Sequence record: NC_047838.1
Length of the DNA stretch: 64,000 nt
Reading direction: 5' to 3' (one strand)
The position numbers were made by a program, and so were the translations under genes. This document shows positions 19,368 to 49,397 of the stretch, piece by piece. Numbering within the stretch: the first letter of the stretch is position 1; the number at the start of each line of letters is the position of its first letter. The notes below the pieces were generated by a model that was given only the letters and a program-made list of their open reading frames with translations, was not told the origin of the DNA and searched no databases.

Positions 19368-19440
19368 GGGGTTATAGCTCAGTTGGTAGAGCGCCTGCTT
19401 TGCAAGCAGGATGTCAGCGGTTCGAGTCCGCTTAACTCCA
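19368..19440 (+). tRNA. tRNA-Ala(UGC)
   Basis: Acceptor GGGGTTA/TAACTCC, anticodon arm CCTGC-TTTGCAA-GCAGG, TTCGA T-loop; CCA not encoded. Confidence 0.95.
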
Positions 19441-31412: not shown

Positions 31413-31486
<74 letters not shown>

Positions 31487-31538
31487 CTGGGCATCAGGAG
31501 AGACCACCACCACCTCCTCTCCTGTGTAAGACCCGCTT

Positions 31539-31609
31539 GCGAGTGTGGTGTAGCGGTAACATGCGAGCCTTCCAAGCTCTTGTCACGGGTTCGATCCCCG
31601 TCACTCGCT
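31539..31609 (+). tRNA. tRNA-Gly(UCC)
   Basis: GCGAGTG/CACTCGC acceptor; loop CTTCCAA. Confidence 0.93.
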
Positions 31610-31610
31610 T

Positions 31611-31730
31611 AACGGATTAGCGACATCCGTGCTCACATCTCCGAGAGAAAAAAGAATCGGAACAACAACCCATGTGAGAGAGGGGTGGGATCCCCCTTGG
31701 TGCTACCGCTGCTGACGAGTAGCGGTTATT
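31611..31730 (+). ncRNA. Candidate multi-stem structured RNA between tRNA-Gly and tRNA-Asn
   Basis: ACGGAT/ATCCGT; CTCACAT/ATGTGAG enclosing TCCGA/TCGGA; AGGGG/CCCCT; ACCGCTGCT/AGTAGCGGT. Confidence 0.55.
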
Positions 31731-31735
31731 CTCAA

Positions 31736-31808
31736 TCCTCTATAGCTCAGTTGGTAGAGCAGGTGACTGTTAATCACCCTGTCCCTGGTTCGAGTCCAGG
31801 TGGAGGAG
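31736..31808 (+). tRNA. tRNA-Asn(GUU)
   Basis: TCCTCTA/TGGAGGA; GGTGA-CTGTTAA-TCACC. Confidence 0.95.
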
Positions 31809-31811
31809 TAC

Positions 31812-31883
31812 GGGAGTTTGGCGCAGCGGTAGCGCATCTGCTTTACACGCAGCTGGTCACTGGTTCGATCCCAGTAACTCCCA
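31812..31883 (+). tRNA. tRNA-Val(UAC)
   Basis: GGGAGTT/AACTCCC; loop TTTACAC; one mismatch at the top of the anticodon stem. Confidence 0.9.
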
Positions 31884-31907
31884 TTCCCTCTAAGAGGTCT
31901 ATGAAAA

Positions 31908-32156
31908 ATGATTACCGTAAGATGCAAAGAATGTGGAAAGGAATTGACTTCCACTAGTAAGGTTCAATTCTGTGGTTGCCCCAACCAAGTAAGAGTTGTG
32001 GACAACAAAGTTGGTGCTGTTGACTTGGATAAAGTCGTAATGGTATCTAACAACGTAGAGAATAAGATTAACAGTCATTTCTCTAGATCAGAACTCCTCT
32101 ATCAAGAGGAGAGACGTAGGCGCAAAGTTCGTAGACTGGACTTTGAAGTCAAATAA
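31908..32156 (+). CDS. Small Zn-ribbon hypothetical protein
   Basis: CKEC...CGC; GAGG SD. Confidence 0.7.
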   Translation: MITVRCKECGKELTSTSKVQFCGCPNQVRVVDNKVGAVDLDKVVMVSNNVENKINSHFSRSELLYQEERRRRKVRRLDFEVK

Positions 32157-32243
32157 GGAAGAGTGGTCGAGTGGTTTATGGCACTGGTCTTGAAAACCAG
32201 CGAGGGTGCAAGTCCTCCGTGGGTTCAAATCCCACCTCTTCCG
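32157..32243 (+). tRNA. tRNA-Ser(UGA)
   Basis: GGAAGAG/CTCTTCC; CTGGT-CTTGAAA-ACCAG; long variable arm; 87 nt. Confidence 0.95.
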
Positions 32244-32319
32244 TTATAATTTCCTAATATTTAATATTTTTGTAACAGTCTGATACACTAGATAGGTTGT
32301 AGGCAATCTTTCTACCACC

Positions 32320-32475
32320 ATGCATCCCGACGAGTTACAAAACTGGCAGATTATCAAAGAGAAATTTGAGGAAAACGGCACAACAGACAACTACTTTTAC
32401 AAGCGAGCTTGTGCTATAGTAAGCGGGCAACCGGACCCGATGAGTAATTTACCAAATGTCTCACAGGATGGATGA
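32320..32475 (+). CDS. Small hypothetical protein (51 aa, not in ORF track)
   Basis: MHPDELQNWQIIKEKFEENG...YFYKRACAI. Confidence 0.6.
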   Translation: MHPDELQNWQIIKEKFEENGTTDNYFYKRACAIVSGQPDPMSNLPNVSQDG

Positions 32476-32638
32476 GATCAAACCTGAGCACTACCTTACT
32501 AAAAAAGAGTGCCAGGAGATGATCGACAAAGCAATTGACAAACACAATAAAACTGCTACAGTTATAAGTGCCATCCTCGGCGGTATCCTCCTTGCGTTTT
32601 ATTCGCATGGTGTGCTATCATTAGTAGGTCGAGTGTAG
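32456..32638 (+). CDS. Small membrane protein
   Basis: C-terminal hydrophobic helix ISAILGGILLAF. Confidence 0.65.
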   Translation: MSHRMDEIKPEHYLTKKECQEMIDKAIDKHNKTATVISAILGGILLAFYSHGVLSLVGRV

Positions 32639-32689
32639 GCTGCGGTAACCCCCTTGGTAGTTCAGGGTTAGCGGCGACAGGAACTACCA
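32639..32689 (+). ncRNA. Candidate H-type pseudoknot immediately 5' of tRNA-Pro
   Basis: TAACCC/GGGTTA stem (extendable by GCTGC/GCGGC); loop TGGTAGTTC is complementary to downstream GAACTACCA. Confidence 0.5.
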
Positions 32690-32692
32690 CCA

Positions 32693-32766
32693 CGGGGTGT
32701 AGCTCAGTTTGGTAGAGCACTCGCTTTGGGAGCGAGTGGCCGAAGGTTCAAATCCTTTCACCCCGA
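32693..32766 (+). tRNA. tRNA-Pro(UGG)
   Basis: CGGGGTG/CACCCCG; CTCGC-TTTGGGA-GCGAG. Confidence 0.95.
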
Positions 32767-32958
32767 TTGCTTATACATAATGGCAAGATGCAATTTTTTT
32801 CTGTGGAATACTGGCAGGAGAACTGGGAAACTCTCATGGAGAGAGTGGAGAATGGGGAAACAATTGGTGTAGAGAATGAGAACGGAGATAGAGCAGTAAT
32901 GGTTCCAGCGGATGATGAAATCATACGCTTATACACAGATCACGAAGAAGGATCGTAG
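32767..32958 (+). CDS. Small hypothetical protein (true start probably internal)
   Basis: ...VEYWQENWETLMERVENGETIGV... Confidence 0.55.
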   Translation: MLIHNGKMQFFSVEYWQENWETLMERVENGETIGVENENGDRAVMVPADDEIIRLYTDHEEGS

Positions 32959-33031
32959 GGGGGTTTAGCAATCTGGTGAATGCAGCAAACTCATAATTTG
33001 CCTAAGGTGAGTTCGATCCTCACAACCCCTA
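32959..33031 (+). tRNA. tRNA with CAU anticodon (elongator Met or Ile2; not initiator)
   Basis: GGGGGTT/AACCCCT; GCAAA-CTCATAA-TTTGC lacks the three G-C pairs of initiator tRNA. Confidence 0.88.
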
Positions 33032-33634: not shown

Positions 33635-33835
33635 ATGGCAACAAAAGGAACGGCAGCAAAGTCTGCAAGTGGTGCATCGATGTCTAAGTATGATGTCGAA
33701 GTAGAGGCACGACTTAATCAAATTGAAGCGAGACTCGCAGAGATGGAAGTTAAACTTTATGAAGGTTCTGACGACTCTGTGAAAGCACAGTTGGAAGATC
33801 TTATTAAAAGACTACAGCGCAAAATGAGTTTCTGA
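33635..33835 (+). CDS. Small coiled-coil late protein
   Basis: TAAATA at 33604-33609; MATKGTAAKSASG... Confidence 0.7.
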   Translation: MATKGTAAKSASGASMSKYDVEVEARLNQIEARLAEMEVKLYEGSDDSVKAQLEDLIKRLQRKMSF

Positions 33836-33930
33836 TGGTTTCTTGCTTTACCTAAGAGCAAGTGGTGCGGATGGAGGTAACACTCCCGCCCTGTTTCTTG
33901 CTTCAGGTTAAAGAGCAAGTGGCGTGCATG
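33836..33930 (+). ncRNA. Probable wcaG RNA motif (tandem hairpin-pseudoknot units with two UGGYG)
   Basis: Two units X-TTTCTTGCTT-X'-TAA(A)GAGCAAG-TGGYG, upstream of a WcaG-type SDR gene; family assignment from memory of the Rfam description. Confidence 0.6.
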
Positions 33931-33942
33931 AAAGACCTTACG

Positions 33943-33972
33943 AGGGGTGGTTGTGTAAACCGCCCCTTTTTG
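33943..33972 (+). terminator. Intrinsic terminator with overlapping extended -10 promoter (TGcTATGAT 33972-33980)
   Basis: AGGGGTGGTT-gtgta-AACCGCCCCT-TTTTT. Confidence 0.7.
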
Positions 33973-34005
33973 CTATGATATATAAGGAGGAAAATTACTA
34001 TTATT

Positions 34006-35091
34006 ATGTCTCAGTATAAGAAGACAGCACTTGTTCTTGGTGCTGGTGGATTTATTGGAAGTCATATGGTCAAACGCCTACGCGCTGAGGGATATTGGGT
34101 GCGCGGTGTGGACCTTAAGGATACTGAGTTTTCATCGACTCAAGCACATGAATTTGTCACCGGTGATCTACGTGATGTGAGGTTTGTTCGTGAGTGTATC
34201 CAGTTCAAAGGATACCCTGGCAACTTTAATGCAAACGTACCTTATCAGTATGTTGAACCTTTTGATGAGATCTATCAGTTTGCTGCTGATATGGGTGGAG
34301 CAGGATTTGTCTTTACTGGAGAGAATGATGCAGAGATTATGCATAACTCCTGTACTATTAACTTGAATGTTCTTGAGGAAGTTCGTAAACTGAACGAGAC
34401 CTTCGATGGTGTTGTAAAAGAATGGACGGAAGCAAATCGTCCTAAGTTGGATCAACCCACCAAGATCTTCTACTCTGGATCTGCTTGCATGTATCCTGAG
34501 TATAATCAACTTGACCCTGATAACCCTGATTGCCGTGAAGAATCAGCATACCCAGCAGCACCAGACTCAGAGTATGGGTGGGAGAAACTCTTCAGTGAGC
34601 GGTTGTATCTCGCTTATAATAGGAATCATGGCATTCCTATTTGTATTGCTCGCTACCACAATATCTTCGGACCAGAAGGAACCTGGGAGGGAGGAAGAGA
34701 GAAAGCGCCAGCTGCAATCTGCCGCAAGGTCGCTTATCTCCCGGAGTCGGGTGGAGCAATCGAGGTGTGGGGAGATGGTCTACAGACTCGTTCCTTCCTG
34801 TTCATTGATGAATGCATCGAAGCGACTTGGAGACTAATGCAGTCTGACTTCCAAGGACCTGTGAATATTGGTTCTGAAGAGATGGTTACAATCAATCAAC
34901 TCGTGGATACCGTTGCTAAAGTTTCTGGTAAGGATGTGAACAAGATTCATATCGATGGTCCTCTTGGAGTCCGTGGTCGTAACTCTAACAACGATCTGAT
35001 TCGTGAGAATCTTGGATGGGATTATCAGATGACTCTTGAGGAGGGCATCGCTAAAACTTATGCATGGATTGAGGAGCAAACTAAACAGTGA
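34006..35091 (+). CDS. GDP-mannose 3,5-epimerase-like SDR
   Basis: GAGGFIG, AADMGG, SACMYP, YGWEK, GTWEGGREKAPAAICRK, WGDGLQTRSF closely follow GME motifs. Confidence 0.88.
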   Translation: MSQYKKTALVLGAGGFIGSHMVKRLRAEGYWVRGVDLKDTEFSSTQAHEFVTGDLRDVRFVRECIQFKGYPGNFNANVPYQYVEPFDEIYQFAADMGGAGFVFTGENDAEIMHNSCTINLNVLEEVRKLNETFDGVVKEWTEANRPKLDQPTKIFYSGSACMYPEYNQLDPDNPDCREESAYPAAPDSEYGWEKLFSERLYLAYNRNHGIPICIARYHNIFGPEGTWEGGREKAPAAICRKVAYLPESGGAIEVWGDGLQTRSFLFIDECIEATWRLMQSDFQGPVNIGSEEMVTINQLVDTVAKVSGKDVNKIHIDGPLGVRGRNSNNDLIRENLGWDYQMTLEEGIAKTYAWIEEQTKQ

Positions 35092-35894
35092 TTGGATTTA
35101 ATTATCTTGGCAAACTGGGGCAACTTGGAAATCAAATGTTCCAGGTTGCTGCCCTGAAAGGTATTGCTGCCAATCGTGGTTTTAACTTTTGCTTTCCAAA
35201 CCATGATGAAGTTTTTGATGATGGTATCGGAAACAAACTGCACATCGAATTGTTCAAACCATTCAAGTTGTCTCGCACCAGTCAACTGAATCTTCAGGCA
35301 ATTGATCCTGACAGACCTGTAGTTCAGGAGCAAGGATTTCAATTCAACGAAACTCTGTTTAATGAGTGTCCTGACTGGGTGAGTCTGTATGGATTCTTCC
35401 AGACTGAAAAATACTTCAAGCATATTGAAGATGAGATCCGTGAGGACTTCTCATTTAAGGATGAGATTGAGGGACCATGTAAGGAGATGATTGAAGCAGT
35501 TGAAGAACCGATTGGTCTTCACATTCGTAGAGGAGATTTTCTTACGAATAACGCTAATCACAACAATCTGACCCTTGAATACTATGCTGAAGCATTAGAT
35601 AAATTTAAGTCAGATAGAAATGTGATTATTTTTTCTGATGATACTGAGTGGTGTAAGCAACAGGAACTGTTCTCTGGCGATAGATTCCTTGTCTCAGAAA
35701 GTGGCAACCCATATGTTGATCTCTGTCTGATGAGCATGTGCTCTGACTTTATTATTGCCAACAGCACGTTCTCCTGGTGGGGTGCATGGTTGGCGAATAG
35801 AGGTACAGTCATCGCTCCTAAGAAATGGTTCGGACCTAATAACGCACACCTAGATACTAGTGACTTATATCCTGAGAGTTGGACTGTGATATGA
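35088..35894 (+). CDS. GT11 alpha-1,2-fucosyltransferase-like
   Basis: GQLGNQMFQ, HIRRGDF, ANSTFSWWGAWL. Confidence 0.92.
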   Translation: MIGFNYLGKLGQLGNQMFQVAALKGIAANRGFNFCFPNHDEVFDDGIGNKLHIELFKPFKLSRTSQLNLQAIDPDRPVVQEQGFQFNETLFNECPDWVSLYGFFQTEKYFKHIEDEIREDFSFKDEIEGPCKEMIEAVEEPIGLHIRRGDFLTNNANHNNLTLEYYAEALDKFKSDRNVIIFSDDTEWCKQQELFSGDRFLVSESGNPYVDLCLMSMCSDFIIANSTFSWWGAWLANRGTVIAPKKWFGPNNAHLDTSDLYPESWTVI

Positions 35895-36607
35895 AACTTG
35901 CCGTTGTTTTTATTGGCACAGGTGACTATATTAACTTCTTACCTTCATATTATGAGGCATGTGAAGAGTTTCTAGTCCCTAATACTGAGAAGACATACTT
36001 TGTTTTTACTGATGGTGACATCGGTGATCCTCCAGAGAATGTGAAACTGTATGAGCAAGAGCATCTGCCTTGGCCATATATCACTCTGGAGCGTTTTAAG
36101 TATATCTTAAAAGCAGAGTCTGACCTAGCAGAATTTGATTATGTTCTCTTCCTAGATGCAGACACCCGTGTGGTTGAGACTGTGACTGAGGAAGAATTGT
36201 TCACCGACAAGAAATATATTGGTGTTCATCACCCCTGCCATTTCTTGGGTATGCCACCTCATGACAACCCTCCTGGTGCCTTTGAGACACGCTTTGAATC
36301 TGCTGCTGGTATTTCAGGTGATGATGACACCTCAATTTACTTCCAGGGGTGTCTGTGGGGAGGTAAGATGCCCTATGTTCTTGATATGATTAGGGAGTTG
36401 GCACAGAGAACTCAGTTTGATTTAAATCGTGATGTCATCGCACAGTGGCATGATGAGAGTCAGATGAATAAATTCTTTTGTGAACGCAGAGAAGACGTTC
36501 ATGTGATGGGACCAGAATATGCATACCCAGAATGCTTTGGAGCATACTGCACCTTTGAACCCAAAATCGTGCATCTAGCAAAGGACAATTCAAAGTATCA
36601 GCAGTAA
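35891..36607 (+). CDS. GT6 alpha-1,3-galactosyl/GalNAc transferase-like
   Basis: FIGTGDY, YFVFTD, FLDAD (DxD), YFQGCLWGG, WHDESQMNK. Confidence 0.9.
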   Translation: MKLAVVFIGTGDYINFLPSYYEACEEFLVPNTEKTYFVFTDGDIGDPPENVKLYEQEHLPWPYITLERFKYILKAESDLAEFDYVLFLDADTRVVETVTEEELFTDKKYIGVHHPCHFLGMPPHDNPPGAFETRFESAAGISGDDDTSIYFQGCLWGGKMPYVLDMIRELAQRTQFDLNRDVIAQWHDESQMNKFFCERREDVHVMGPEYAYPECFGAYCTFEPKIVHLAKDNSKYQQ

Positions 36608-37287
36608 TGTTTAACAGGTATGTAAATAAAGCAGACTTGCTTATCTACAGTAAGTTTATTTTAGATAATCAGTATCCTGATAGATACAGGATGAAGAACG
36701 ATCAAGAGCAGCACCTTTATAAGACACCTGATTGTTATTCAAAGTGGGCGTCTATCCTGATGATGTTTAATGAGATTAAAAAGGATGGTATAAAGGTTGT
36801 CGATCTGGGTGTAGGTGAGGGACCAGTTCCACATATTATCTGTGACCAAGGATATGATGTCACAGGTGTTGATAATATGAGAATAGATCATCCATTTAAG
36901 ACTAGTCTGGTACAGATGATTTTAAGAGATGCCATCGAATTTCTTACAGATATTGAGGAAGAATCAGTTGATGTATTTACTGACAGTTGCTCTGTAACTC
37001 ACTTTGATTTTGGTGGTGGACAAAATCCTGGATGGAAAAATGTGTTATCTAGTGTGTATCAAAAATTAAAACCAGGTGGATACTTTCTAATCGCTAGTGA
37101 TTGTCATGCTCTACCTGAGAGAAAAACAAACGGAGAGTTTTTGTTAGGAGAGGAAATTGCTGCTACTGCAAAGGAGTGTGGATTTACGTTGACCACAGAG
37201 TTTAATAATGATAAGATGGATATAATTTATAGAAACGCTGGTCGAGAAACAGACTTATCCGTTGCAACCTTTATGTTAAAAAAATGA
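36607..37287 (+). CDS. Class I SAM-dependent methyltransferase-like
   Basis: VVDLGVGEG motif I, LKPGG. Confidence 0.75.
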   Translation: MFNRYVNKADLLIYSKFILDNQYPDRYRMKNDQEQHLYKTPDCYSKWASILMMFNEIKKDGIKVVDLGVGEGPVPHIICDQGYDVTGVDNMRIDHPFKTSLVQMILRDAIEFLTDIEEESVDVFTDSCSVTHFDFGGGQNPGWKNVLSSVYQKLKPGGYFLIASDCHALPERKTNGEFLLGEEIAATAKECGFTLTTEFNNDKMDIIYRNAGRETDLSVATFMLKK

Positions 37288-37820
37288 TTAAACTTGTTAT
37301 TCTTGATGTCGATGGTGTAATGACTGACGGCAAGAAGTATTATGATCGTGACGGTAATGTCGTGATGAAAAACTTCTGTGATAAAGACTGGACTGCAGTC
37401 AAACGCTTTCGTGCGATTGGAATCCCTGTTGTATTTTTGACAGGCGACCCCTTCAACGCCAAAATTCTAAGTAATAGAAACTTACCATACGTTGTCAATC
37501 GTGGTGAAGGATTTCATAGAGATAAGGTAAATTTCCTTGATGAGATTCTTCTTGACTACAATTGTGGAGCAGAGGATGTTGTTTATCTGGGTGACGATCT
37601 GTTTGATTATGGTATAATGGAGGCAGTAGGACACCCTTACTCCATGGCAGACTCTCCTGCTATGCTTCAGAACATTTCTGTGCCTCTTGCCTGCAAGGGT
37701 GGAGAGAATGCTATCATGTATCTGTACGAAGATCTGGAGGAACTGGAGATTATTCCTCGTATTCCTTATGATGTTGTCATGGAAAAAATCTACGAACTTG
37801 ATTTGAAGGAAAAATTCTGA
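37284..37820 (+). CDS. KdsC-like HAD phosphatase
   Basis: LDVDGVMTDG, YLGDDLFD. Confidence 0.85.
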   Translation: MIKLVILDVDGVMTDGKKYYDRDGNVVMKNFCDKDWTAVKRFRAIGIPVVFLTGDPFNAKILSNRNLPYVVNRGEGFHRDKVNFLDEILLDYNCGAEDVVYLGDDLFDYGIMEAVGHPYSMADSPAMLQNISVPLACKGGENAIMYLYEDLEELEIIPRIPYDVVMEKIYELDLKEKF

Positions 37821-38491
37821 TGAAAGATATTTCTCTTTATGGTCACTTGACGATTGATACGATTGTCGATGGTGTTAAAGAAAGAAAGACTCTGGGTTCT
37901 ATGGCAAACGTCTGGAAAGCGTTGCTAGAACTAGATGCGACCCTTGATATTGGTCTCTCACCTATTGATGTGGGTCAAGCGTTGATCTATATCGATAAAC
38001 CTGCTGCTCAACGGTACTCAAAGGTGCAGTTGAGTCTGGTAGAACATCAGGCAAAGATCTACTCATCGAAGATTCATCACCTGATTTACCTTAATGAGTT
38101 GACTCGGACTGATTTCATCCCTGCTCTGGACGGTATTATCACCGCAGACATCTGTCCTGGTAGGTCTGTCAATAAAGAGTTACTCAAGCATGTAGACTAT
38201 CTGTTTATTTCTGATGAGGATATTGATGGTGACTTGTCTGACTACACAGAGGTAACAAGAGGATGGGTAATTCTGCATAGTGCCTCTGGTAGTGTGGTCT
38301 CAAACGGTGAGAAGGAGTTTTTCTACAAGTTGCCAGAGGATTTGATGCTCAGGGATGTGAATGTCCTTGGTGCAGGTGATACATTTGCCTCTTGTTTCTT
38401 GCATAAATTACTACAGAATGAAGGAGATATCCACAACTGGATTGAATTTGCTCATTTAAAGACGACTGAAATCATTAGGAATTCAATATGA
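37820..38491 (+). CDS. PfkB/ribokinase-family sugar kinase (divergent)
   Basis: C-terminal DVNVLGAGDTF signature. Confidence 0.75.
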   Translation: MKDISLYGHLTIDTIVDGVKERKTLGSMANVWKALLELDATLDIGLSPIDVGQALIYIDKPAAQRYSKVQLSLVEHQAKIYSSKIHHLIYLNELTRTDFIPALDGIITADICPGRSVNKELLKHVDYLFISDEDIDGDLSDYTEVTRGWVILHSASGSVVSNGEKEFFYKLPEDLMLRDVNVLGAGDTFASCFLHKLLQNEGDIHNWIEFAHLKTTEIIRNSI

Positions 38492-39645
38492 AACCAAATA
38501 TCCTTGTCCCTATGGCAGGACTTGGGAGCCGCTTCATCAAAGAAGGGTTCAAGGTTCCCAAGCAGTTAATTAATATCAAAGATAAACATCTGATTGACAT
38601 CTCTCTTGATTGTTTGGATTATGAGGGATGCAATCTTATTTTTGTGGTTCGTGATGAGACAGTCTATAATCACCACATGGACGAACTTCTGCGTAAGAAG
38701 TTTGGTGACGACATCAAAGTAGTTATTCTCGATAAACTAACAGATGGATCGGTTTCTAGTTGTCTTTACGCCGAAGAATATATTGACAACGATGCTCCTC
38801 TTATTATTCATACTCTGGATATTGAGTTTAGACCCGTTTTTAATCCTCATGTTATGACAGAGATGGATGCTGATGGACTGATCCTCACATTCAAATCAAA
38901 CTCTGCAAACTACAGTTATGCTAAGGTCGGTGACGATGGATTTGTCACGGAGACTGCAGAGAAGAAAGCAATTAGCAATAATGCCTGTGTAGGAATCTAT
39001 GGATTCAAGAAAGGATCTGACTTCTGCAAGTATGCACGAGACATGATCAACCGTGACCTACGCACTAAGAATGAGTTTTATATCTCTCCACTTTACAATC
39101 TTTTGATTGAAGACAACAAACAGATCAAGACACGATCTGTAGATAAAATGCATGTCTTTGGAACTCCTGATGAATATCACTTCTACAAAGATAATGTCAC
39201 TCGTCGTATTGGTGATAAACCTATTGCCATTTGTTCTGATCATTCTGGCTTTGAGGCAAAAGAAATCTTCAAAGAAGTTCTAGACAAGCATGGTCTGGAG
39301 TATATTGACTTTGGAACTGTGTTGAATCGTGATTGTGACTACCGTGATTACATCGCATCAGCAGTCAAATCTATCGGTGAGCGTGATTGTGACTATGGAT
39401 TTGGGTTTTGTCGCACAGGTCAAGGTGTGAATATCTGTGCAAACAAGTACAAAGGTATTAGATCTGCTCTGATTTATGATAATTTTGCTATGGAAATGTC
39501 AATCCGACACAACTGTGCAAACTTTTTTGCTATCCCAGCAAAGGATGCAGACTATGATGTATTAGATAAGTATCTTGAGATCTGTTCCTCCAATACCTTT
39601 GATGGTGGTCGTCATCAGATTCGTATTCAGGAGTTGGAGAAGTGA
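38488..39645 (+). CDS. Fusion: sugar-phosphate nucleotidyltransferase plus RpiB/LacAB isomerase
   Basis: N-term VPMAGLGSRF...PK; C-term SDHSG, CRTGQG, HNCAN, FDGGRH. Confidence 0.88.
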   Translation: MKPNILVPMAGLGSRFIKEGFKVPKQLINIKDKHLIDISLDCLDYEGCNLIFVVRDETVYNHHMDELLRKKFGDDIKVVILDKLTDGSVSSCLYAEEYIDNDAPLIIHTLDIEFRPVFNPHVMTEMDADGLILTFKSNSANYSYAKVGDDGFVTETAEKKAISNNACVGIYGFKKGSDFCKYARDMINRDLRTKNEFYISPLYNLLIEDNKQIKTRSVDKMHVFGTPDEYHFYKDNVTRRIGDKPIAICSDHSGFEAKEIFKEVLDKHGLEYIDFGTVLNRDCDYRDYIASAVKSIGERDCDYGFGFCRTGQGVNICANKYKGIRSALIYDNFAMEMSIRHNCANFFAIPAKDADYDVLDKYLEICSSNTFDGGRHQIRIQELEK

Positions 39646-39962
39646 TTGAAGCAAATATTCAAGACTTTCATGGGGGATGGTTCGTAGGAGACTTCGATCC
39701 ATCCCTTTTCAAGAACCCATTTTTTGAGGTTGCACACCATAAACATGAGAAAGGATGTGAAACATTCCCTCATTTTCACAAAGTCACTAATGAGTTGAAC
39801 TATATTGTGAGTGGTGAACTCATGGTTTCTGGTAAACATTTGAAAGCAGGAGACATGTGGATCTATGAACCGAATGAAGTCTCTGATGTTGAGTTCCTTG
39901 AGGACTCTGAATTGATTATTGTAAGGTGGCCATCTATTCCCTCTGATAAGTATCCAGCATGA
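39642..39962 (+). CDS. Small cupin
   Basis: GWFVGDF, PHFH...ELNY, PNE. Confidence 0.75.
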   Translation: MIEANIQDFHGGWFVGDFDPSLFKNPFFEVAHHKHEKGCETFPHFHKVTNELNYIVSGELMVSGKHLKAGDMWIYEPNEVSDVEFLEDSELIIVRWPSIPSDKYPA

Positions 39963-40711
39963 AACTAGCACTTTGTTTTTCGGGGCAACCCAGGTTCACA
40001 GAGGAGTGTTCTGGTAGCATTCTTGCTAATGTTATCCAAAATCATGACGTTGATGTCTTCGCACACCTGTGGTTTGACGAAGATTTGCAGACAAAACCCT
40101 ATAAATTTGGTGGAACTGGTGCATGGGAGGCACAGAGAATCCAAGAGAATGCTATTGAGACCTTCCAAAAGATCTACCAACCTGTCAGTCTGGCAGTAGA
40201 AAAGAGCAAATTCTTTGGTGATCCTGACCTTGATGCTGACTTTGAGGCATCAGAAGCAAAGTATTGGCCAGGTGGTATTGAAGAGCAACCAGACTTTCAG
40301 AAGAGACAAATCAACAACAGTCTCTCATATTTCTACAGTCTCTGTGAGGCAAATAGATTAAGAAAACTGTATGAATATGATAATAAGATAAAATATGATT
40401 ATGTAATTAGATGTAGAACCGATAGCGTGGTGCAAGTTCCCATCCCATATGAGAAATTTGACCCTAATGCAATCCATTTTACGTCACTTCAAGCACCTCC
40501 ACCGTTCCTGAATGACTGGTTTAACTTCGGTGGACCCGAAGCGATGGAGTCATTTATGGGTGTATTCCCTCTCCTTCGCAGTTTGATCCGCTCAACTAAG
40601 GAGAGACGTGAGGGAACATGGTGCATCGAACTAATTCATGTGGAGTTGCTAGATAGAATGGGCATCCCCATGCAGAGGCATCCAATCCCCGTCACACTTC
40701 CAAGATTCTGA
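39959..40711 (+). CDS. Putative glycosyltransferase-like protein (paralog of 44799)
   Basis: LALCFSGQPR...YDYVIRCRTD...NDWF. Confidence 0.55.
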   Translation: MKLALCFSGQPRFTEECSGSILANVIQNHDVDVFAHLWFDEDLQTKPYKFGGTGAWEAQRIQENAIETFQKIYQPVSLAVEKSKFFGDPDLDADFEASEAKYWPGGIEEQPDFQKRQINNSLSYFYSLCEANRLRKLYEYDNKIKYDYVIRCRTDSVVQVPIPYEKFDPNAIHFTSLQAPPPFLNDWFNFGGPEAMESFMGVFPLLRSLIRSTKERREGTWCIELIHVELLDRMGIPMQRHPIPVTLPRF

Positions 40712-40712
40712 T

Positions 40713-42287
40713 ATGAAAGTTGTAATTCCCATGTCTGGGATGAGTCGTAGATTCTCAGTAGCAGGTTATAAAGATCCAAAATACCTTTTAGAGATTGATG
40801 GCATGACTGTCATCGAACATATTGTCAATCTGTATCCAAAAGACTCAGAGTTTGTATTCATTATTAATGACAAACATGAGAAAGAGACTGAAGTAGTTGA
40901 AGTTTTGAACCGTATTACAGATGATCCGACCATCATTACCATCAATCAACATAAGAAAGGACCAGTTCATACGGTATTAGAGGCAGAGAGATTTATCGAT
41001 GATGATGAACCTGTCATCGTTAATTACTGTGACTTCTCTATGAAGTGGGACTACGATGACTTTGTTTCTCACGTCGAAGACACCGAGTGTGATGGGTCTG
41101 TGATCTCATATACTGGATTCCACCCTCACATGCTGGGTAGTGATAACTATGCTTTCTGTAGATTAAGAGAAGGATCATATCAGATCGAAGAGATTAGAGA
41201 GAAGCAACCATTTACTGACAACAAGATGTCAGAGTATGCCTCTACTGGCACTTACTATTTCAAGAAAGGTAAGTATATCAAGCATTATTTTCAGCAATTG
41301 ATTGATGAAGAAATCAGTTGTAAGGATGAATATTATGTCAGTCTTGTTTACAACTTGATGATTAAGGATGGACTTTATAACACCGTATATGAGGTCCCAA
41401 ACATGCTTCAGTGGGGAACACCACTAGATGTGAAGATGTATCAGCAGTGGTCAAATTACTATGCTGACAATATGAATGGCATCAAACTTCTTAAAATTAA
41501 GGGATGCACCACCGTCATTCCCATGGCAGGTGCAGGTAGTAGATTCTCAAAAGAAGGATACGGAGTTCCCAAACCATTTCTTGAAGTGAATGGTGGATAT
41601 ATGATCAATCAGGCACTCCGATGCCTTCCTGAAACTGATAATAAGATCTTTGCATGTCTCAGATCTCATATGAGTATGCTGCCCCTAGAGGACTTTGAAA
41701 ACGTTGTTTGGATTGATGAGGTCACAGAGGGACAAGCTTGCACCACAGAATTATTGGTTGACAAAGTGAACGAGGGTGATTCAATTCTACTCTCTGCATG
41801 TGATAATGGTGCTCTCTATGACTCAGATAAGTTTGCAGACCTTATTGAGAATGTTGAGAATGATATTGTAGTCTGGAGTTATAGAAATAATTACACAGCA
41901 CACCACAATCCCAACATGTATTCGTGGTTAGATGTGGATGATGATGGAAATGTTAACAAGGTAAATGTCAAGAAATTCCCATATGGATCAAACCCTGTAG
42001 ATGAATATGCTATAGTAGGGACTATGTTCTTTAGAAATAAAGAAGTTTATAAAAAATCTCTTGAACGACTGTATGAAATCGATGAGAGAGTTAACGGTGA
42101 GTTCTATGTAGATACACTATTGAACACCGCAATAGAACTTGGATACAAGGTCAAGAATTTTGAGATTGATCACTATATTTGTTGGGGAACACCTAACGAT
42201 TTAAAGACTTATAGATACTGGCAAAGATTTTTTACATCTGTAGATTGGCACCCTTATGACTACTATAAAGATTTCTTCACAGATTAG
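40713..42287 (+). CDS. Tandem double sugar-nucleotidyltransferase-domain protein
   Basis: Two N-terminal signatures VIPMSGMSRRF and VIPMAGAGSRF, each ending WGTP. Confidence 0.85.
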   Translation: MKVVIPMSGMSRRFSVAGYKDPKYLLEIDGMTVIEHIVNLYPKDSEFVFIINDKHEKETEVVEVLNRITDDPTIITINQHKKGPVHTVLEAERFIDDDEPVIVNYCDFSMKWDYDDFVSHVEDTECDGSVISYTGFHPHMLGSDNYAFCRLREGSYQIEEIREKQPFTDNKMSEYASTGTYYFKKGKYIKHYFQQLIDEEISCKDEYYVSLVYNLMIKDGLYNTVYEVPNMLQWGTPLDVKMYQQWSNYYADNMNGIKLLKIKGCTTVIPMAGAGSRFSKEGYGVPKPFLEVNGGYMINQALRCLPETDNKIFACLRSHMSMLPLEDFENVVWIDEVTEGQACTTELLVDKVNEGDSILLSACDNGALYDSDKFADLIENVENDIVVWSYRNNYTAHHNPNMYSWLDVDDDGNVNKVNVKKFPYGSNPVDEYAIVGTMFFRNKEVYKKSLERLYEIDERVNGEFYVDTLLNTAIELGYKVKNFEIDHYICWGTPNDLKTYRYWQRFFTSVDWHPYDYYKDFFTD

Positions 42288-43368
42288 ATACTGGGACCAA
42301 AGTCCAACTAGAAGAATCACACCTACGGACAGGAATGGTAGGACAATTGAGGTAGCATATTTTCATCTCGCTCAATTCACAGGATATTCTAAACATTATC
42401 CTCTTCCACTTCTTTACTCTTATAAGAATAAAAAACTCTCTCTACCTTTGAGAGAAAAGTTCATGTCTTTGGACAGAGGAACAGTCTATGAAGCAAGTGA
42501 TATGTTTTTTGAGGATGAACTTCCTGAGGTGCAAAAGACAGTAGACATTCCCGTGTTTTACTTCGTGTATAACATGGCAAACTATTACCATTTTATCTAC
42601 GATACACTGCCATATCTGTACTCTTACTTTAATGAGAAGAAGATTCACCCTGACATGAAACTCCTTGTCAGTCCGCCTGAGGGTCAGGATGATCTGTATC
42701 CTTTCGTATGGGACTCTTTGAACATGCTGGGGATTACGAAAGATGATGTGGTGTTTCTTGACCCAGAAGTGATGTATAACCGTGTATGTGTGTCATCTTC
42801 TCTGACACATAATGGTCTCTCTAACTGTCCACCCCATGACGGTGTGTTTGAGATTTTGAATAGTTTGAAGAGTGACTATATTGGTCCAGAAAAGATTTAT
42901 ATCTCACGTCGCACCTGGGTTCACAATAAAAAAGACAACATCGGAACGGACTATACAGAACGTCGTCGCTGTGTAAATGAAGATCAGATGGCACAGATCT
43001 TTAAACTGTATGGATTTAAAGAAATTTTCTGTGAGAACTTGACAATGGAGGAGAAGATTGGTATGTTTAGGACTGCAAAATATGTCGCAGGTCCTATAGG
43101 TGGTGGGATGTGCAATCTTATTTTCTCTCCTTCAGAGACCAAAGTTATGTCAATCAATAGTCCTACATTCATGGATGTGAACTTGAGATTCGCATACTCT
43201 ATGGTTCATACCGATCTCTTTAACTTTGAACATACAGAGTTTGTGGATAGGCAGGAGGAGAGTGTTGAGAGTGAGGGATCTCTATCTATTACTGGGGGTC
43301 TTAATTCACCTTGGCAAGTTGATCTAAATAAACTATCCAAAATTCTTGATAAATGGATTCAATCATAG
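42256..43368 (+). CDS. GT61/DUF563 glycosyltransferase-like
   Basis: NYYHFIYD, KIYISRR, ENLTMEEKI, GPIGGGMCNLIF. Confidence 0.8.
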   Translation: MTTIKISSQIRYWDQSPTRRITPTDRNGRTIEVAYFHLAQFTGYSKHYPLPLLYSYKNKKLSLPLREKFMSLDRGTVYEASDMFFEDELPEVQKTVDIPVFYFVYNMANYYHFIYDTLPYLYSYFNEKKIHPDMKLLVSPPEGQDDLYPFVWDSLNMLGITKDDVVFLDPEVMYNRVCVSSSLTHNGLSNCPPHDGVFEILNSLKSDYIGPEKIYISRRTWVHNKKDNIGTDYTERRRCVNEDQMAQIFKLYGFKEIFCENLTMEEKIGMFRTAKYVAGPIGGGMCNLIFSPSETKVMSINSPTFMDVNLRFAYSMVHTDLFNFEHTEFVDRQEESVESEGSLSITGGLNSPWQVDLNKLSKILDKWIQS

Positions 43369-44015
43369 AGTTAGCAAGGACGTTAGGTCCATATGCTATA
43401 TGCGGGGAGGGTAACGTCTCCGTGAAGGATGATGACTGTTTCTGGGTGAAAGCAAGTGGTACATCACTTGACACTCTTGAGAAGAAAGATCTTGTCGCGT
43501 GCAAGATGAGTGGTGTGCCTTTTGATTCTCTGGGCATCAAACCAAGTATTGAAACTTCTTTTCATGCATGGTTGCAGCGTGAGTTTGATGCTATCAAGTA
43601 TGTGGCACACACTCATCCTCCCAAGACGATGCAGGTTGTGTGTTCAGAGCAGATTTACTCGTTTGCTGAGCATAGATTGTTTCCTGATCAGGTGGTGAGG
43701 AACGGTGCAAAGTCTTGCGTCGTGCCATATGCCATGCCAGGTAAACCACTTTTAGAAGAAATTAAGAAGAGTGTTCTTGCATTTATAGAGGTTGAGGAAT
43801 ATTTTCCTAAATTGATCTTACTGCAGAATCATGGTATAATTGTAGCGTCTACCTCACACAAAGAGTGTATTGCATCTACTCTGATGTGTGAAAAATCTGC
43901 AGAGATCTTTATTGGTGCAAAGGTTCTGGGTCAAACTAGATTCCTTTCTGCTGAAGAGGTTGAAGAAATTGACAAGTGTCCAAGCGAAGAAAGAAGGAGA
44001 ATGATGTATCGATGA
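43353..44015 (+). CDS. Class II aldolase/adducin family protein
   Basis: GNVS, KPSIETSFH, AHTHP, LLQNHG. Confidence 0.88.
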   Translation: MDSIIELARTLGPYAICGEGNVSVKDDDCFWVKASGTSLDTLEKKDLVACKMSGVPFDSLGIKPSIETSFHAWLQREFDAIKYVAHTHPPKTMQVVCSEQIYSFAEHRLFPDQVVRNGAKSCVVPYAMPGKPLLEEIKKSVLAFIEVEEYFPKLILLQNHGIIVASTSHKECIASTLMCEKSAEIFIGAKVLGQTRFLSAEEVEEIDKCPSEERRRMMYR

Positions 44016-44320
44016 TAATCTACGTTGATATTGACGAGACCATTTGTCATAGAGAAACTTCTACTGACTTTGGAGTGACGCATGACTATACGAAAGCAAA
44101 ACCCATTCAAGAAAACATAGATAAGATTAATAAGTTGTATGATGATGGTCATACAATTGTCTATTGGACTGCACGAGGCAGTAGAAAACAGATTGACTGG
44201 ACTGAACTTACTAAGAATCAATTGGAAGAGTGGGGTGCCAAGTATAATGAACTGAGAACTGACAAACCTTTCTATGATCTTTTTGTTGAAGATAAATCAT
44301 GTGTGATCGAACAACTTTAA
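44012..44320 (+). CDS. Minimal HAD-superfamily phosphatase
   Basis: YVDIDETIC, WTARG, KP, DK. Confidence 0.8.
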   Translation: MIIYVDIDETICHRETSTDFGVTHDYTKAKPIQENIDKINKLYDDGHTIVYWTARGSRKQIDWTELTKNQLEEWGAKYNELRTDKPFYDLFVEDKSCVIEQL

Positions 44321-44802
44321 AAATTATTTCTCACCGAGGTAATATTAAAGGACCTCAACCAGACAAAGAAAATAGACCTAGTTACATCGATTGTGCTATT
44401 GGTAATGGATATCAGGTAGAGATTGATGTCAATCTACGTGATGGTGAACTGTGGTTAGGTCATGATGAACCTCAGTATAAGATCAATCATAAGTGGATTG
44501 ATGAGAGAGCAGATTATCTGTGGTTGCACTGCAAGGACTTTGATGCGGCTAGAGAGTGCTGGCAATATCAAGCATTCTGTCACTCTGGTGATCCATTCGT
44601 TTACACCTCTAACGGTAAGATCTGGTTGCATGGTGAGAATGACAACCTATATACCCTTGACGACATGACTATTATTCCAGTCATTAACGAAGAGGATTCA
44701 AAGTCCTTTGGCACTATGTTGCTGAGAGGGTCTACACAATTTTTTGGAATGCCTTTTGGTGTTTGTACTGACTACCCTGCCATTATTGGAGAATATGTAT
44801 GA
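44299..44802 (+). CDS. Glycerophosphodiester-phosphodiesterase-like (short TIM barrel)
   Basis: ISHRG...EN...VEIDV...LGHD...VCTDY. Confidence 0.7.
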   Translation: MCDRTTLKIISHRGNIKGPQPDKENRPSYIDCAIGNGYQVEIDVNLRDGELWLGHDEPQYKINHKWIDERADYLWLHCKDFDAARECWQYQAFCHSGDPFVYTSNGKIWLHGENDNLYTLDDMTIIPVINEEDSKSFGTMLLRGSTQFFGMPFGVCTDYPAIIGEYV

Positions 44803-45554
44803 GTAAGAAATTTGCGGTTTGTTTTTCTGGGTATCCTAGATTCGTTAGACAACAATTTAAGAGCATCAAAGAGAACTTCTTAGATGGTCTGGGTGACTAT
44901 GATGTCTACGCTAAGTTCCAATGGAAAGACGATTACGAAAATATTCAGATTCATCATGAGTATGATGATAAGTTTGAGGTCAACGAACTTGAGGACTTCA
45001 AAGAACTGTATGCAGACAAACTGAAGAAGATTGAGGTTATTGAACCATACAAGTTTGACTTAGAGTTTAGTGACCAGAGTGCTGAAGGAGATATGTTCCT
45101 GTCCAAAGAGCAGGCAAAGGATGTTGGATATCGAATGAAGTGCCAGTTCCAAGGTATTGCTGACTGTATTGACATCATCGACAATATCGAGGACTATGAT
45201 TATGTTGTCCGCATGAGGACTGATGTGACCTTCATGTCTGAGATTGAGATGAAGGACCTTGAGACTGATGTCATCATGAATCAGGATGGTTTTGTTGCTG
45301 GTCGTGATCGTCCCTGGTCTGATTGGTTCTTCATCTCTCCGGTCAAGGATGTTCAGTTCTTTCATGATATGGCAAAGATTGAGGAGCACTTTAGTGGGGG
45401 TGTCAGACACACCCATAACGTCCTTGCAGAGGTCGGACGTAAGTATGGCATGGAATACTTTGAGTTCTATGTTAGAACTCCCACAGCAACTGGTGGTGAT
45501 ATTGGCACACCGTTTAAGAAACAAACTAACAAGTATACTGTTATTGCACGATGA
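44799..45554 (+). CDS. Putative glycosyltransferase-like protein (paralog of 39959)
   Basis: FAVCFSGYPR...YDYVVRMRTD...SDWF. Confidence 0.55.
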   Translation: MSKKFAVCFSGYPRFVRQQFKSIKENFLDGLGDYDVYAKFQWKDDYENIQIHHEYDDKFEVNELEDFKELYADKLKKIEVIEPYKFDLEFSDQSAEGDMFLSKEQAKDVGYRMKCQFQGIADCIDIIDNIEDYDYVVRMRTDVTFMSEIEMKDLETDVIMNQDGFVAGRDRPWSDWFFISPVKDVQFFHDMAKIEEHFSGGVRHTHNVLAEVGRKYGMEYFEFYVRTPTATGGDIGTPFKKQTNKYTVIAR

Positions 45555-46567
45555 CTACAGTTTTTGCCAAGGCACCGTTGCGTTTAGCGATGGCAGGTGG
45601 CGGAACTGATCTTCTGCCATACTGGAGACATTATGGTGGTGTGGTATTGAATGGGACGATTGACCAGTATGCTTACTGTAAGATTGAACCATACCATGAG
45701 TGGTTGTTTAAGAGTGTTGATCTTGAAGAGGAGGAGGGGTATTTTCCTCTAGGTGATCAGTATGTTGACACAAAATTAAAACTGCTGATCAATACATATC
45801 AATACCTTACAAAGGGTATTGATAGGCATCCTGTTAAGATCACAACATTTGTTGAGGCACCTCCTGGTAGTGGTCTTGGTAGTTCTAGTGCTCTTGTAGT
45901 AGCACTTATCTCTGCTATTGCTGAGTATTACAGCATCCCTCTAGGCGAATATGATGTTGCAGAGTATGCTGTAGAGATTGAAAGAAATATTTGTAACCTT
46001 CCAGGTGGTAAGCAGGATCAATTTGCTGCTGCATTTGGTGGGTTTAACTTTATTGAGTTCTTGCCTGACGGTAGGACAATTGTGAATCCTTTGAGACTTA
46101 ATCCAAAGACTCAGAACATGCTTGAGTTGAGCACGGTCTTGTATTACGTCGGCAAACCAAGGATGGACGAGAGAGTTATTGAGAATACTTCACTTAATCT
46201 CCTCAATAACGATGAAGCAACTCTACAAGCAACACATAGAATCAAATCTGCTGCCATAGAATACAAGAGAAGTCTTCTTCTAGGTGATGTTGATAAGATC
46301 TGTGAGACCATGAACACCTATTGGAAGAACAAAATTCAGACTAATGAGAAGGTTGTCTCTCCTGAGTTGCTAGATAGTTATGAGTTTGCTCTTAAGAACG
46401 GAGCGAAAGCTGCTAAGATATCTGGTGCTGGTGGCGGTGGTCACATGATTCTCTTCACAGATTTTGAGAGGAGACATCAACTTATTTCTGCTCTGAAAAA
46501 GAGAAAGAAGGGAAGAGTGGTGCCATTTAAGTTCGTCAAACATGGGGTTGATGTATGGAGACCGTAG
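45551..46567 (+). CDS. hddA: D-glycero-D-manno-heptose 7-phosphate kinase (GHMP)
   Basis: KAPLRLAMAGGGTD, PPGSGLGSSSA, GGKQDQFAAAFGG, KISGAGGGG. Confidence 0.9.
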   Translation: MTTVFAKAPLRLAMAGGGTDLLPYWRHYGGVVLNGTIDQYAYCKIEPYHEWLFKSVDLEEEEGYFPLGDQYVDTKLKLLINTYQYLTKGIDRHPVKITTFVEAPPGSGLGSSSALVVALISAIAEYYSIPLGEYDVAEYAVEIERNICNLPGGKQDQFAAAFGGFNFIEFLPDGRTIVNPLRLNPKTQNMLELSTVLYYVGKPRMDERVIENTSLNLLNNDEATLQATHRIKSAAIEYKRSLLLGDVDKICETMNTYWKNKIQTNEKVVSPELLDSYEFALKNGAKAAKISGAGGGGHMILFTDFERRHQLISALKKRKKGRVVPFKFVKHGVDVWRP

Positions 46568-46905
46568 AACTTCATCCAAAAGGATGGGGATACGAAAAAT
46601 GGATTGTCAATACTGATGAGTATTGTGGCAAACTTCTCTTCTTTGAAGAAGGAAAGAGGTGTTCGTGGCACTATCATAAACTGAAAGATGAAACTTTCTA
46701 TCTTCAGTCTGGTAAGATGTTGCTTTATTATGGAGACTCTGACGATCTGAACTTAGCAAAGGACCGTATCTTAGAACCAGGAGACAAGTTTCATATCTAC
46801 CGTGGATTGAGACATCAGATGGTTGCAGTTGAACCGTCTGAACTTTTTGAATTTTCAACACAACATTTTGAAGATGATAGTTACAGAGTTATCAAAGGGG
46901 ACTAA
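46555..46905 (+). CDS. Cupin, mannose-6-phosphate-isomerase type II-like
   Basis: KGWGYE, CSWHYHKLKDETF, HQM. Confidence 0.75.
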   Translation: METVELHPKGWGYEKWIVNTDEYCGKLLFFEEGKRCSWHYHKLKDETFYLQSGKMLLYYGDSDDLNLAKDRILEPGDKFHIYRGLRHQMVAVEPSELFEFSTQHFEDDSYRVIKGD

Positions 46906-49352: not shown

Positions 49353-49377
49353 CTTGAGAGACAATATATACTATGAT
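49349..49377 (+). promoter_or_regulatory. Internal sigma70-like promoter in the glycan island
   Basis: TTGACT-17 nt-TATGAT in the only sizeable gap of the island. Confidence 0.65.
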
Positions 49378-49397
49378 TGAAGAAACATATTGTCTGT

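Follow-up and report, generated by a model that had tools for sequence, protein, structure and literature searches.

Pairs of glycosyltransferases from families GT11 and GT6 make the human ABO(H) antigens and the bacterial mimics of them. Such a pair is found at positions 34006-36607 of the window, by which we mean the whole stretch of 64,000 nucleotides that was analysed, and here it is preceded by a gene for a GDP-mannose 3,5-epimerase (GME). The window corresponds to bases 124001-188000 of Synechococcus phage Bellamy (MF351863.1), and the 2.6-kb stretch with the three genes is identical to it at 100%. Bellamy is a T4-like cyanomyovirus of the Kyanoviridae with WH8109 as its host and a genome of 204,930 bases. 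The three genes are its genes 200-202, and their names in GenBank are 'NAD-dependent epimerase/dehydratase' and, twice, 'glycosyltransferase', nothing more specific. In related phages, the place in front of one GT11-GT6 frame is taken by GME or by the GDP-fucose genes Gmd and Fcl, as cassettes that are mostly alternatives.

The three genes run into each other. Stop and start overlap in GTGA (35088-35091) between GME and GT11 and in ATGA (35891-35894) between GT11 and GT6, and a 1-base overlap in TAATG (36605-36609) joins GT6 to a fourth gene. Because of these overlapping junctions the genes of the trio can be taken as translationally coupled. The start of GT6 is most likely ATG 35891 rather than TTG 35879, since the former is the annotated start and aligns to Met1 of BoGT6a, the GT6 enzyme of Bacteroides ovatus. 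The trio forms the front end of a run of sugar genes on one strand, about 24 kb long (34006-58128).

The leader of the operon contains a wcaG RNA, which matches the full model (1-98) at 93.6 bits (gathering score 42, E=1.7e-16) and ends 72 bases before the start of GME. This RNA is an orphan riboswitch candidate known from marine metagenomes and T4-like cyanophages (PMC2864571). A terminator-like hairpin follows it, which is a possible expression platform, and between the hairpin and the GME start codon (ATG 34006) there is an AAGGAGG Shine-Dalgarno site. The same RNA was found at 7 of the 18 related loci that were scanned, where it heads GME-first and Gmd-first operons alike; it also leads operons opening with another short-chain dehydrogenase/reductase (SDR) or with a 2-oxoglutarate oxygenase. 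Since it heads operons of all these kinds, the distribution points to a GDP-sugar-related compound as its ligand. The wcaG RNA is in this way tied to GDP-sugar operons of both flavours, and the search for its ligand is narrowed.

Table 1. Positions of the features in the window and of selected features in related loci (L numbers)
Feature	Position	Strand	Evidence or remark
wcaG RNA, orphan riboswitch candidate, 5' leader of the operon	33834..33933	+	Rfam RF01761
Terminator-like hairpin and T-run between wcaG RNA and GME	33942..33975	+	11-pair stem at 33942-33968 (6 G-C pairs), then TTTGCT
GDP-mannose 3,5-epimerase (GME), 361 aa	34006..35091	+	Pfam Epimerase 1.6e-36, well above the curated cut-off; PDB 2c59
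GME, first insert, residues 67-81 (15 residues)	34204..34248		
GME, second insert, residues 128-152	34387..34461		
GT11 (alpha-1,2-fucosyltransferase family), 268 aa	35088..35894	+	PF01531; GTG start overlaps GME stop
GT6 (ABO/alpha-3-GalT family), minimal DxD cyanophage clade, 238 aa	35891..36607	+	PF03414; ATG overlaps GT11 stop
SAM-methyltransferase-like fourth gene	36607..37287	+	Pfam Methyltransf_23/11, E=1e-6 to 1e-5
Rest of the one-strand glycan cluster	37284..58128	+	Pfam and NCBIfam scans
Nucleotidyltransferase fused to RpiB/LacAB-type sugar-phosphate isomerase, 385 aa	38488..39645		
Double nucleotidyltransferase, 524 aa	40713..42287		
GDP-heptose module	45551..49352		
Cupin of the heptose module	46555..46905		
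RmlD-like reductase of the heptose module	47518..48336		
Gmd paralogue of the heptose module	48333..49352		165-168 bits to TIGR01472, cut-off 415
Carbamoyltransferase and NadE-like amidotransferase-type protein	52119..55284		Carbam_trans_C, 2.9e-59
GT25	57253..58128		
Single tRNA gene	19368..19440		
Cluster of seven tRNA genes	31413..33031		
wcaG RNA in related loci	L094:2322-2421, L095:1285-1380, L100:1703-1800, L105:1338-1436, L107:399-493, L120:2267-2370, L127:505-604		
GT10-like fucosyltransferase of S-SM2, 268 aa	L095:3579-4385		PF00852, E=4.5e-12

The epimerase and the two transferases

In a search of the PDB, the solved GMEs 2c59 and 8sg0 match the Bellamy epimerase at 280 and 275 bits, against 71 bits for the best sugar SDR that is not a GME, and the match to the Arabidopsis enzyme (2c59) extends over residues 10-359 (E=2.3e-82). 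The NAD site G12xxG15xxG18, which is of the extended SDR type, is invariant among 117 distinct phage homologues. The same is true (117/117) of S159, C161, Y190, K194 and K233, the equivalents of the catalytic S143, C145, Y174, K178 and K217 of Arabidopsis; the offset in residue numbering was verified against the K178R mutant chain of that enzyme. Judged by its sequence the Bellamy protein is a genuine GME, and its predicted products are GDP-L-galactose and some GDP-L-gulose. Its catalytic Cys/Lys pair and Ser-Tyr-Lys triad are identical to those of plant GME (2c59) and of the Methylacidiphilum enzyme (PMC8787198). The plant enzyme serves ascorbate synthesis, whereas the phage enzyme sits in a glycan operon and carries two loop inserts. 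The first of these is absent from plant GME and present in 112 of the 117 phage homologues, and the second is variable, with short (10-11 aa) and long (24-25 aa) forms.

The second gene matches PF01531 (Glyco_transf_11) with 112.6 bits against a cut-off of 23.9 (E=2.8e-32), and PHROG 2644 with E=1.6e-122. Its HxRRxD motif is H145-I-R147-R148-G-D150, in which R147 is invariant and the other residues are at least 90% conserved among 32 homologues, and the C-terminal block S-x-x-S-W-W-G-A is present. No chain was matched when the PDB was searched with the GT11 sequence. An AlphaFold2 model made with the 32 homologues has a pLDDT of 94.7 and a pTM of 0.92, and when this model was compared with solved structures by Foldseek, the top matches listed were all POFUT1, NodZ, FUT8 and AtFUT1 (E 1e-6 to 3e-5). 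The modelled fold is thus that of the GDP-fucose-dependent GT-B fucosyltransferase superfamily. Four fucosyltransferases, FUT8, AtFUT1, FucT-A and FucT-V, have been shown experimentally to use GDP-L-galactose as donor (PMC8787198), and the first two of these also belong to the four families whose folds were matched by the GT11 model.

The third gene matches PF03414 (Glyco_transf_6) with 69.8 bits against a cut-off of 25 (E=2.3e-19), and it can be aligned end to end with BoGT6a (4ayj, E=3e-20) and with human GTA/GTB (E~1e-13). In this alignment D89-A-D91 (F-L-D-A-D) falls column for column on N95-A-N97 (F-F-N-A-N) of BoGT6a, and the catalytic Glu, E189 within W-H-D-E-S, on E192 of BoGT6a and E303 of GTA/B. 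E189 is invariant in 41 distinct phage homologues; D89-A-D91, H114, C116, Y150, Q152-G-C154, H228 and K231 are invariant or nearly so, and W186 is mostly W, at times F or Y. Minimal GT6 enzymes with a DxD have been defined as a clade in PMC3516806, with those of cyanophage P-SSM2 and Parachlamydia (PaGT6) as its typical members; there PaGT6 is found to transfer GalNAc solely to H antigen or 2'-fucosyllactose, to require Mg or Mn, and to be inactive on non-fucosylated N-acetyllactosamine (LacNAc). It has been suggested that this clade can serve as a model of the enzyme from which the vertebrate ones descend. Bellamy GT6 agrees with it in its size of about 240 aa, in the DxD and in marine phage origin; the Q-G-C donor triad, invariant in the clade of the Bellamy enzyme, is unlike that comparison system.

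An earlier note on this DNA had described a GME-like SDR, a GT11 and a GT6 as the first three coupled genes, and this is borne out by Pfam, by the matches to solved GMEs and by the overlapping junctions. The DxD that it saw in GT6 (FLDAD) is likewise real, as the alignment to BoGT6a makes clear. To treat the motif as a peculiarity was an overstatement, because it is a published hallmark of the cyanophage GT6 clade (PMC3516806) and is present in 41/41 of the phage sequences.

Among the residues by which PMC3516806 recognises enzymes for a 2'-substituted galactose acceptor, Bellamy GT6 has His114, Cys116 and His228, and Tyr150 and Lys231 are kept. His114 is at a position that has His in enzymes with 2'-fucosyl acceptors and Gln in alpha3GT, and Cys116 and His228 occupy the positions of the two Trp that exclude fucose in alpha3GT. 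The loop residues that bind 2'-fucosyllactose in BoGT6a (K128, E132, T134) are not conserved in the phage alignment. A preference for a 2'-substituted galactose acceptor is what we infer for the phage enzyme, and it stays at this level because several of the loop contacts are not conserved. For the donor triad, the alignment gives Q152-G-C154 for Bellamy GT6, A-G-G for BoGT6a and M-G-A for the ABO chains; GTA and alpha3GT have L-G-G and H-A-A. The donor sugar of Bellamy GT6 cannot be read from its sequence. The NCBIfam entry NF041524, 'family 6 glucosyltransferase', was considered as a clue to the donor and was not used, as the match (186.6 bits) is below the cut-off of 250 and offers a name only. 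One divergent phage GT6 (possibly L020/L021:5099-5797) has the A-G-G triad of BoGT6a, with Tyr at A2 and Ala at A7, and may represent a second specificity type within phages. The loci L020 and L021 have a GT6-like gene, 31% identical to Bellamy GT6, upstream of their GT11.

The pairing of GT11 with GT6 is also known from the modules of Escherichia coli O86 and of Bacteroides ovatus (BoGT6a); in O86 the two enzymes are WbnK (GT11) and WbnI (GT6). Phage GT6 shares with BoGT6a-type enzymes the catalytic Glu, the His and Tyr for the acceptor, and the C-terminal Lys. Unlike the bacterial NxN enzymes, the phage enzyme has a DxD, from which metal dependence is expected, and lacks a C-terminal membrane-binding domain. 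The donor genes differ as well. Bacterial histo-blood-group modules have Gmd and Fcl, and P-SSM2 has these two upstream of its GT11, whereas Bellamy has GME instead.

Donor genes in phages and their hosts

Phage isolates were compared by tblastn, with all 37 GME records listed and, for GT11, Gmd and Fcl, the best 60 of 103, 89 and 78 records, respectively. All named GME isolates also carry GT11, and every isolate that bears GT6 has GT11 as well. The contiguous, overlapping trio is found in S-CAM9, S-PRM1, S-8S55 and SynMITS9220M01, which together with Bellamy represent at least three named genera and one unclassified phage. The isolates with Gmd and Fcl, namely P-SSM2, P-SSM5, ACG-2014f, S-CAM7, S-SRM01, S-SKS1 and DSL-LC02/03, are not on the complete GME list. 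Gmd and Fcl were also looked for in GME isolates by whole-genome family searches in 13 genomes besides Bellamy; phages B3 and B23, which have GT11 and GT6 and no GME, are outside this check. True Gmd and Fcl are absent from Bellamy and from 12 of the 13 others (13 of 14 in all). In Bellamy no true Gmd or Fcl scores above the NCBIfam cut-offs anywhere in the genome, and the sole Gmd-like gene is a paralogue in a GDP-heptose module. SynMITS9220M01 likewise has one Gmd-like gene only, a heptose-type paralogue like that of Bellamy, and S-CAM9, S-PRM1 and S-8S55 have the contiguous trio and no Gmd-like gene at E<=1e-30 genome-wide.

GME is also paired with transferases of a second fucosyltransferase family. 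In S-SM2, a GT10-like fucosyltransferase overlaps the end of GME, in the slot that GT11 has in Bellamy, and S-T4 and Sf-CH5 (L096, L097) have a gene of equal size at the same place after GME. In other cases the transferase is further away. S-SCSM2R has a GT10-annotated gene three genes downstream of GME, S-SSM7 has, two genes downstream, one that shares a T4-like gene cluster with the GT10-like gene of S-SM2, and Sf-FS3 has a glycosyltransferase two genes downstream; in both S-SSM7 and Sf-FS3 a methyltransferase-like gene and a second SDR intervene. The genes of the S-SM2 type next to GME are annotated merely as 'putative transferase' or 'hypothetical'.

In uncultured phages the module is ecologically common, because more than 600 relatives of GME and nearly 600 of GT11 are listed in IMG/VR, both counts being lower bounds. 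GT11 adjoins GT6 in 23 of 26 loci centred on GT6, and two of the remaining three loci are truncated; in some loci the order is reversed, with GT6 before GT11. The layout GME-GT11-GT6 is seen in L103-L107, L122 and L127, and the layout Gmd-Fcl-GT11-GT6 in L120, L121, L123 and L124. As an example, L107 has, in this order, a wcaG RNA, GME, GT11, GT6, an unknown gene, a TylF-like O-methyltransferase and a HAD/nucleotidyltransferase gene, and L120 has a wcaG RNA, a radical-SAM protein, Gmd, Fcl, GT11, GT6, DUF7796 and a HAD/nucleotidyltransferase gene. In a tree of GT11 the GT6-linked enzymes form one clade, with a weak support of 82, and within it GME-headed and Gmd/Fcl-headed loci interleave, with at least three state changes. 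Within 10 kb of GT11, at 80 loci centred on it, GME is found at 24 and true Gmd at 15, and many loci have neither in range. A GT10-like or GT11 gene lies within 3.5 kb at 32 of the 65 GME-centred loci that have enough downstream sequence.

Hosts were represented by 151 genomes of the family Prochlorococcaceae, reached via a PstS-matched Prochlorococcaceae metagenome-assembled genome (MAG). GME (E<=1e-60) is found in 1 of them. This lone host-family GME (L090, G158:C1:263295-267317) lies on a low-GC chromosome, is 77% identical to the phage enzyme and may be a phage-to-host transfer; it adjoins a UDP-glucose/GDP-mannose dehydrogenase, and about 1.4 kb upstream of it is without long open reading frames. 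One further locus, L086 (CAJXMP010000220.1), is a 4.6-kb contig of a 'Lewinella' MAG with a PstS that is 86% identical to the phage copy, and it is probably a cyanophage contig that was mis-binned into a Bacteroidota MAG.

The sugar that the transferases may add

The reading that we favour, and to which we give about an even chance of being right, is that GME feeds GDP-L-galactose to GT11 and that GT6 then extends the product to an A/B-like branched motif. In this pathway GME would convert GDP-D-mannose of the host to GDP-beta-L-galactose, which the picocyanobacterial host would almost never make as a nucleotide sugar of its own. GT11, as an inverting GT-B transferase, would place L-galactose in alpha-1,2 linkage onto a galactose-type acceptor, and could probably use GDP-L-fucose as well, where present. 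GT6, which would depend on a metal, would attach a hexose in alpha-1,3 linkage to that same residue of the acceptor, and the end product would be a branched trisaccharide like that of blood group A or B, with L-galactose in the position of L-fucose. Here we infer the donor of GT11, the order of GT11 and then GT6, the donor of GT6, the acceptor and the carrier, which may be the host envelope or the virion. The biochemical logic holds because fucosyltransferases, FUT8 and AtFUT1 included, accept GDP-L-galactose (PMC8787198). In the same source, L-galactose replaces L-fucose in the xyloglucan of Arabidopsis mur1, and FUT8 and AtFUT1 L-galactosylate in vitro. The substitution is the same and the transferase folds are near the phage GT11 model, but there it is a matter of a mutant or of the test tube, while in the phage it would be an encoded natural design.

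An A/B-like epitope with L-galactose in place of L-fucose was already proposed in the earlier note, which also saw no Gmd/Fcl pair in the window. The latter is correct and extends to the whole genome as far as true Gmd and Fcl are concerned, with the qualification that a Gmd paralogue is present in the heptose module. The proposed epitope is partly supported. It gains from the exchange of cassettes, from the 13 of 14 isolates without Gmd/Fcl and from the pairing with GT10, and loses from the frequency of GDP-fucose genes in hosts and from the loci where both donor routes occur together.

Several observations speak against a transfer of L-galactose. S-SCSM1 has GME together with a true Gmd (568.6 bits) and Fcl (455 bits), and GME and Gmd, with or without Fcl, are found together at 6 of the 80 GT11-centred IMG/VR loci. 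A strict mutual exclusion of GME and Gmd/Fcl, true for 13 of the 14 isolates, is broken by these cases and was given up for the wording 'mostly alternative'. With the query set used, 21 of the 65 GME loci have no recognised fucosyltransferase neighbour. No consistent specificity-determining positions were found between 20 GME-linked and 7 Gmd/Fcl-linked GT11 sequences, where the only differences are lineage-specific to one 3-sequence clade and the motif residues are invariant; the substrate residues of GT6 that were examined are identical in the two contexts. This lack of differences would fit a promiscuous GT11 equally as well as a GT11 that always uses fucose. The Q-G-C donor triad of GT6 matches no characterised enzyme. 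As to expression, metatranscriptome contigs from three studies are found on 20-27 of the 30 bins of 33700-36700 and bridge the leader-GME, GME-GT11 and GT11-GT6 junctions, a point in favour of the trio as an operon head, but these are assembled contigs only, from which strand and level cannot be read and in which DNA carry-over is possible.

The main rival is that GDP-L-fucose of the host feeds a classical H/A/B module, and that GME serves another transferase of the 24-kb cluster, with GDP-L-galactose or GDP-L-gulose, or at any rate none of the trio. In the host-family genomes Gmd is above cut-off in 115/151 and an Fcl homologue (E<=1e-120) is present in 93/151, and because these genes are so common, GDP-L-fucose may be on hand in the infected cell. 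Hosts are thus often able to make GDP-fucose, while GDP-L-galactose is essentially a capacity borne by the phage. A supply of fucose from the host would also agree with GT11 and GT6 active sites that are the same in both contexts, with the presence of GME alongside Gmd-Fcl in S-SCSM1 and some contigs, and with the other transferases of the cluster (GT61-like, GT4, GT25 and HtrL-like) that GME might serve. However, many phages bring their own Gmd-Fcl directly before GT11-GT6 and are hence independent of the host, and it is this slot in which GME is found. GME moreover overlaps GT11 and is elsewhere paired with GT10-like fucosyltransferases, and no transferase of the Bellamy cluster other than GT11 belongs to a family that is known to use GDP-L-sugars as donors. 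We regard host fucose as a possible, though rather unlikely, source for the trio.

It is improbable that GT11 and GT6 are mere neighbours that act on different acceptors, with no A/B-like branched epitope as a result. The unconserved loop contacts of BoGT6a and the reversed gene order at some loci would be in keeping with such an arrangement, but the two genes are too regularly adjacent in GT6 loci and too regularly found in the same isolates, His114, Y150, E189 and K231 are kept in GT6, and PaGT6 of the same clade is inactive on LacNAc that is not fucosylated (PMC3516806). Very improbable is a third account, in which the phage makes a 6-deoxy-L-hexose of its own. The heptose module consists of HddA (278.8 bits), a cupin, an HddC-like guanylyltransferase, an RmlD-like reductase and the Gmd paralogue, and the last of these together with the cupin and the reductase might make a 6-deoxy-L-sugar, another point against L-galactose, if they acted on GDP-mannose in addition to GDP-heptose and so fed GT11. 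GDP-mannose is a substrate, in vitro, of related heptose 4,6-dehydratases, and the paralogue does have some similarity to TIGR01472. Its place beside HddA and the HddC-like enzyme points to a heptose pathway instead, and S-CAM9, S-PRM1 and S-8S55 have the trio with no Gmd-like gene that could take this part. The converse, that GME acts on the GDP-heptose of the phage, was considered and is unlikely, as 11 of the 13 other GME isolates are without any Gmd-family match (E<=1e-30), a search that did not extend to HddA and HddC.

Another system close to the GME operon of Bellamy is the Gmd-Fcl-GME cluster of S-SCSM1 (PMC9602691), where GME is annotated, a wcaG RNA is upstream and GT11 downstream, as in Bellamy. 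S-SCSM1 differs from Bellamy in possessing both donor routes and in giving no match to GT6. The S-SCSM1 paper makes no link between GME and a fucosyltransferase (PMC9602691). What was known before includes all three protein families, the annotation of GME in this one cyanophage and the DxD clade of GT6 (PMC3516806). The replacement of Gmd-Fcl by GME before a conserved GT11-GT6 pair, the link of GME to two fucosyltransferase families and its near absence from hosts appear to be new, and a search of the literature that was available found no paper that links a replacement by a GME cassette to GT11-GT6.

Only tentatively, these observations may be seen as an ABO-like polymorphism of marine cyanomyoviruses, in which GME, Gmd-Fcl or both can be swapped before GT11 and GT6, a conserved pair, and the wcaG RNA would act as a riboswitch for a GDP-sugar or some metabolite related to it. 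With GME in this place, the infected cell or the virion would carry an A/B-like epitope with L-galactose, which the host could not make. If L-galactose is indeed transferred in these phages, which are very abundant in the ocean, this would be a natural case of a donor substitution hitherto known from plant mutants and test tubes. As the hosts almost never encode GME, L-galactose would also mark infected picocyanobacteria specifically, and GME together with a promiscuous transferase would be a compact pair of enzymes for making L-galactosides.

The remainder of the cluster and the region upstream

Downstream of the trio, the fourth gene is possibly a glycan O-methylase, and its membership of the module is uncertain; in L107, the TylF-like sugar O-methyltransferase gene comes second after GT6. 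The rest of the cluster includes nucleotidyltransferases, a HAD phosphatase, kinases, a GT61-like gene, the heptose module, an HtrL-like gene and a GT4, followed by a carbamoyltransferase, a NadE-like gene, a methyltransferase, sugar dehydrogenase genes and a GT25. From its family name, the GT25 is a candidate for the enzyme that makes the beta-Gal acceptor. The Pfam and NCBIfam scans of the cluster gave no flippase, polymerase or priming transferase. One of the nucleotidyltransferase genes is fused to a sugar-phosphate isomerase, and another is double (Table 1). The carbamoyltransferase and the NadE-like amidotransferase-type protein, both inside the glycan cluster, suggest that carbamoylated or amidated sugars may be made. 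The tRNA genes of the window are, with one exception, clustered directly upstream of the operon, and the same order of tRNA genes and then a glycan operon is seen in S-CAM9, S-SM2, SynMITS9220M01 and IMG/VR loci.

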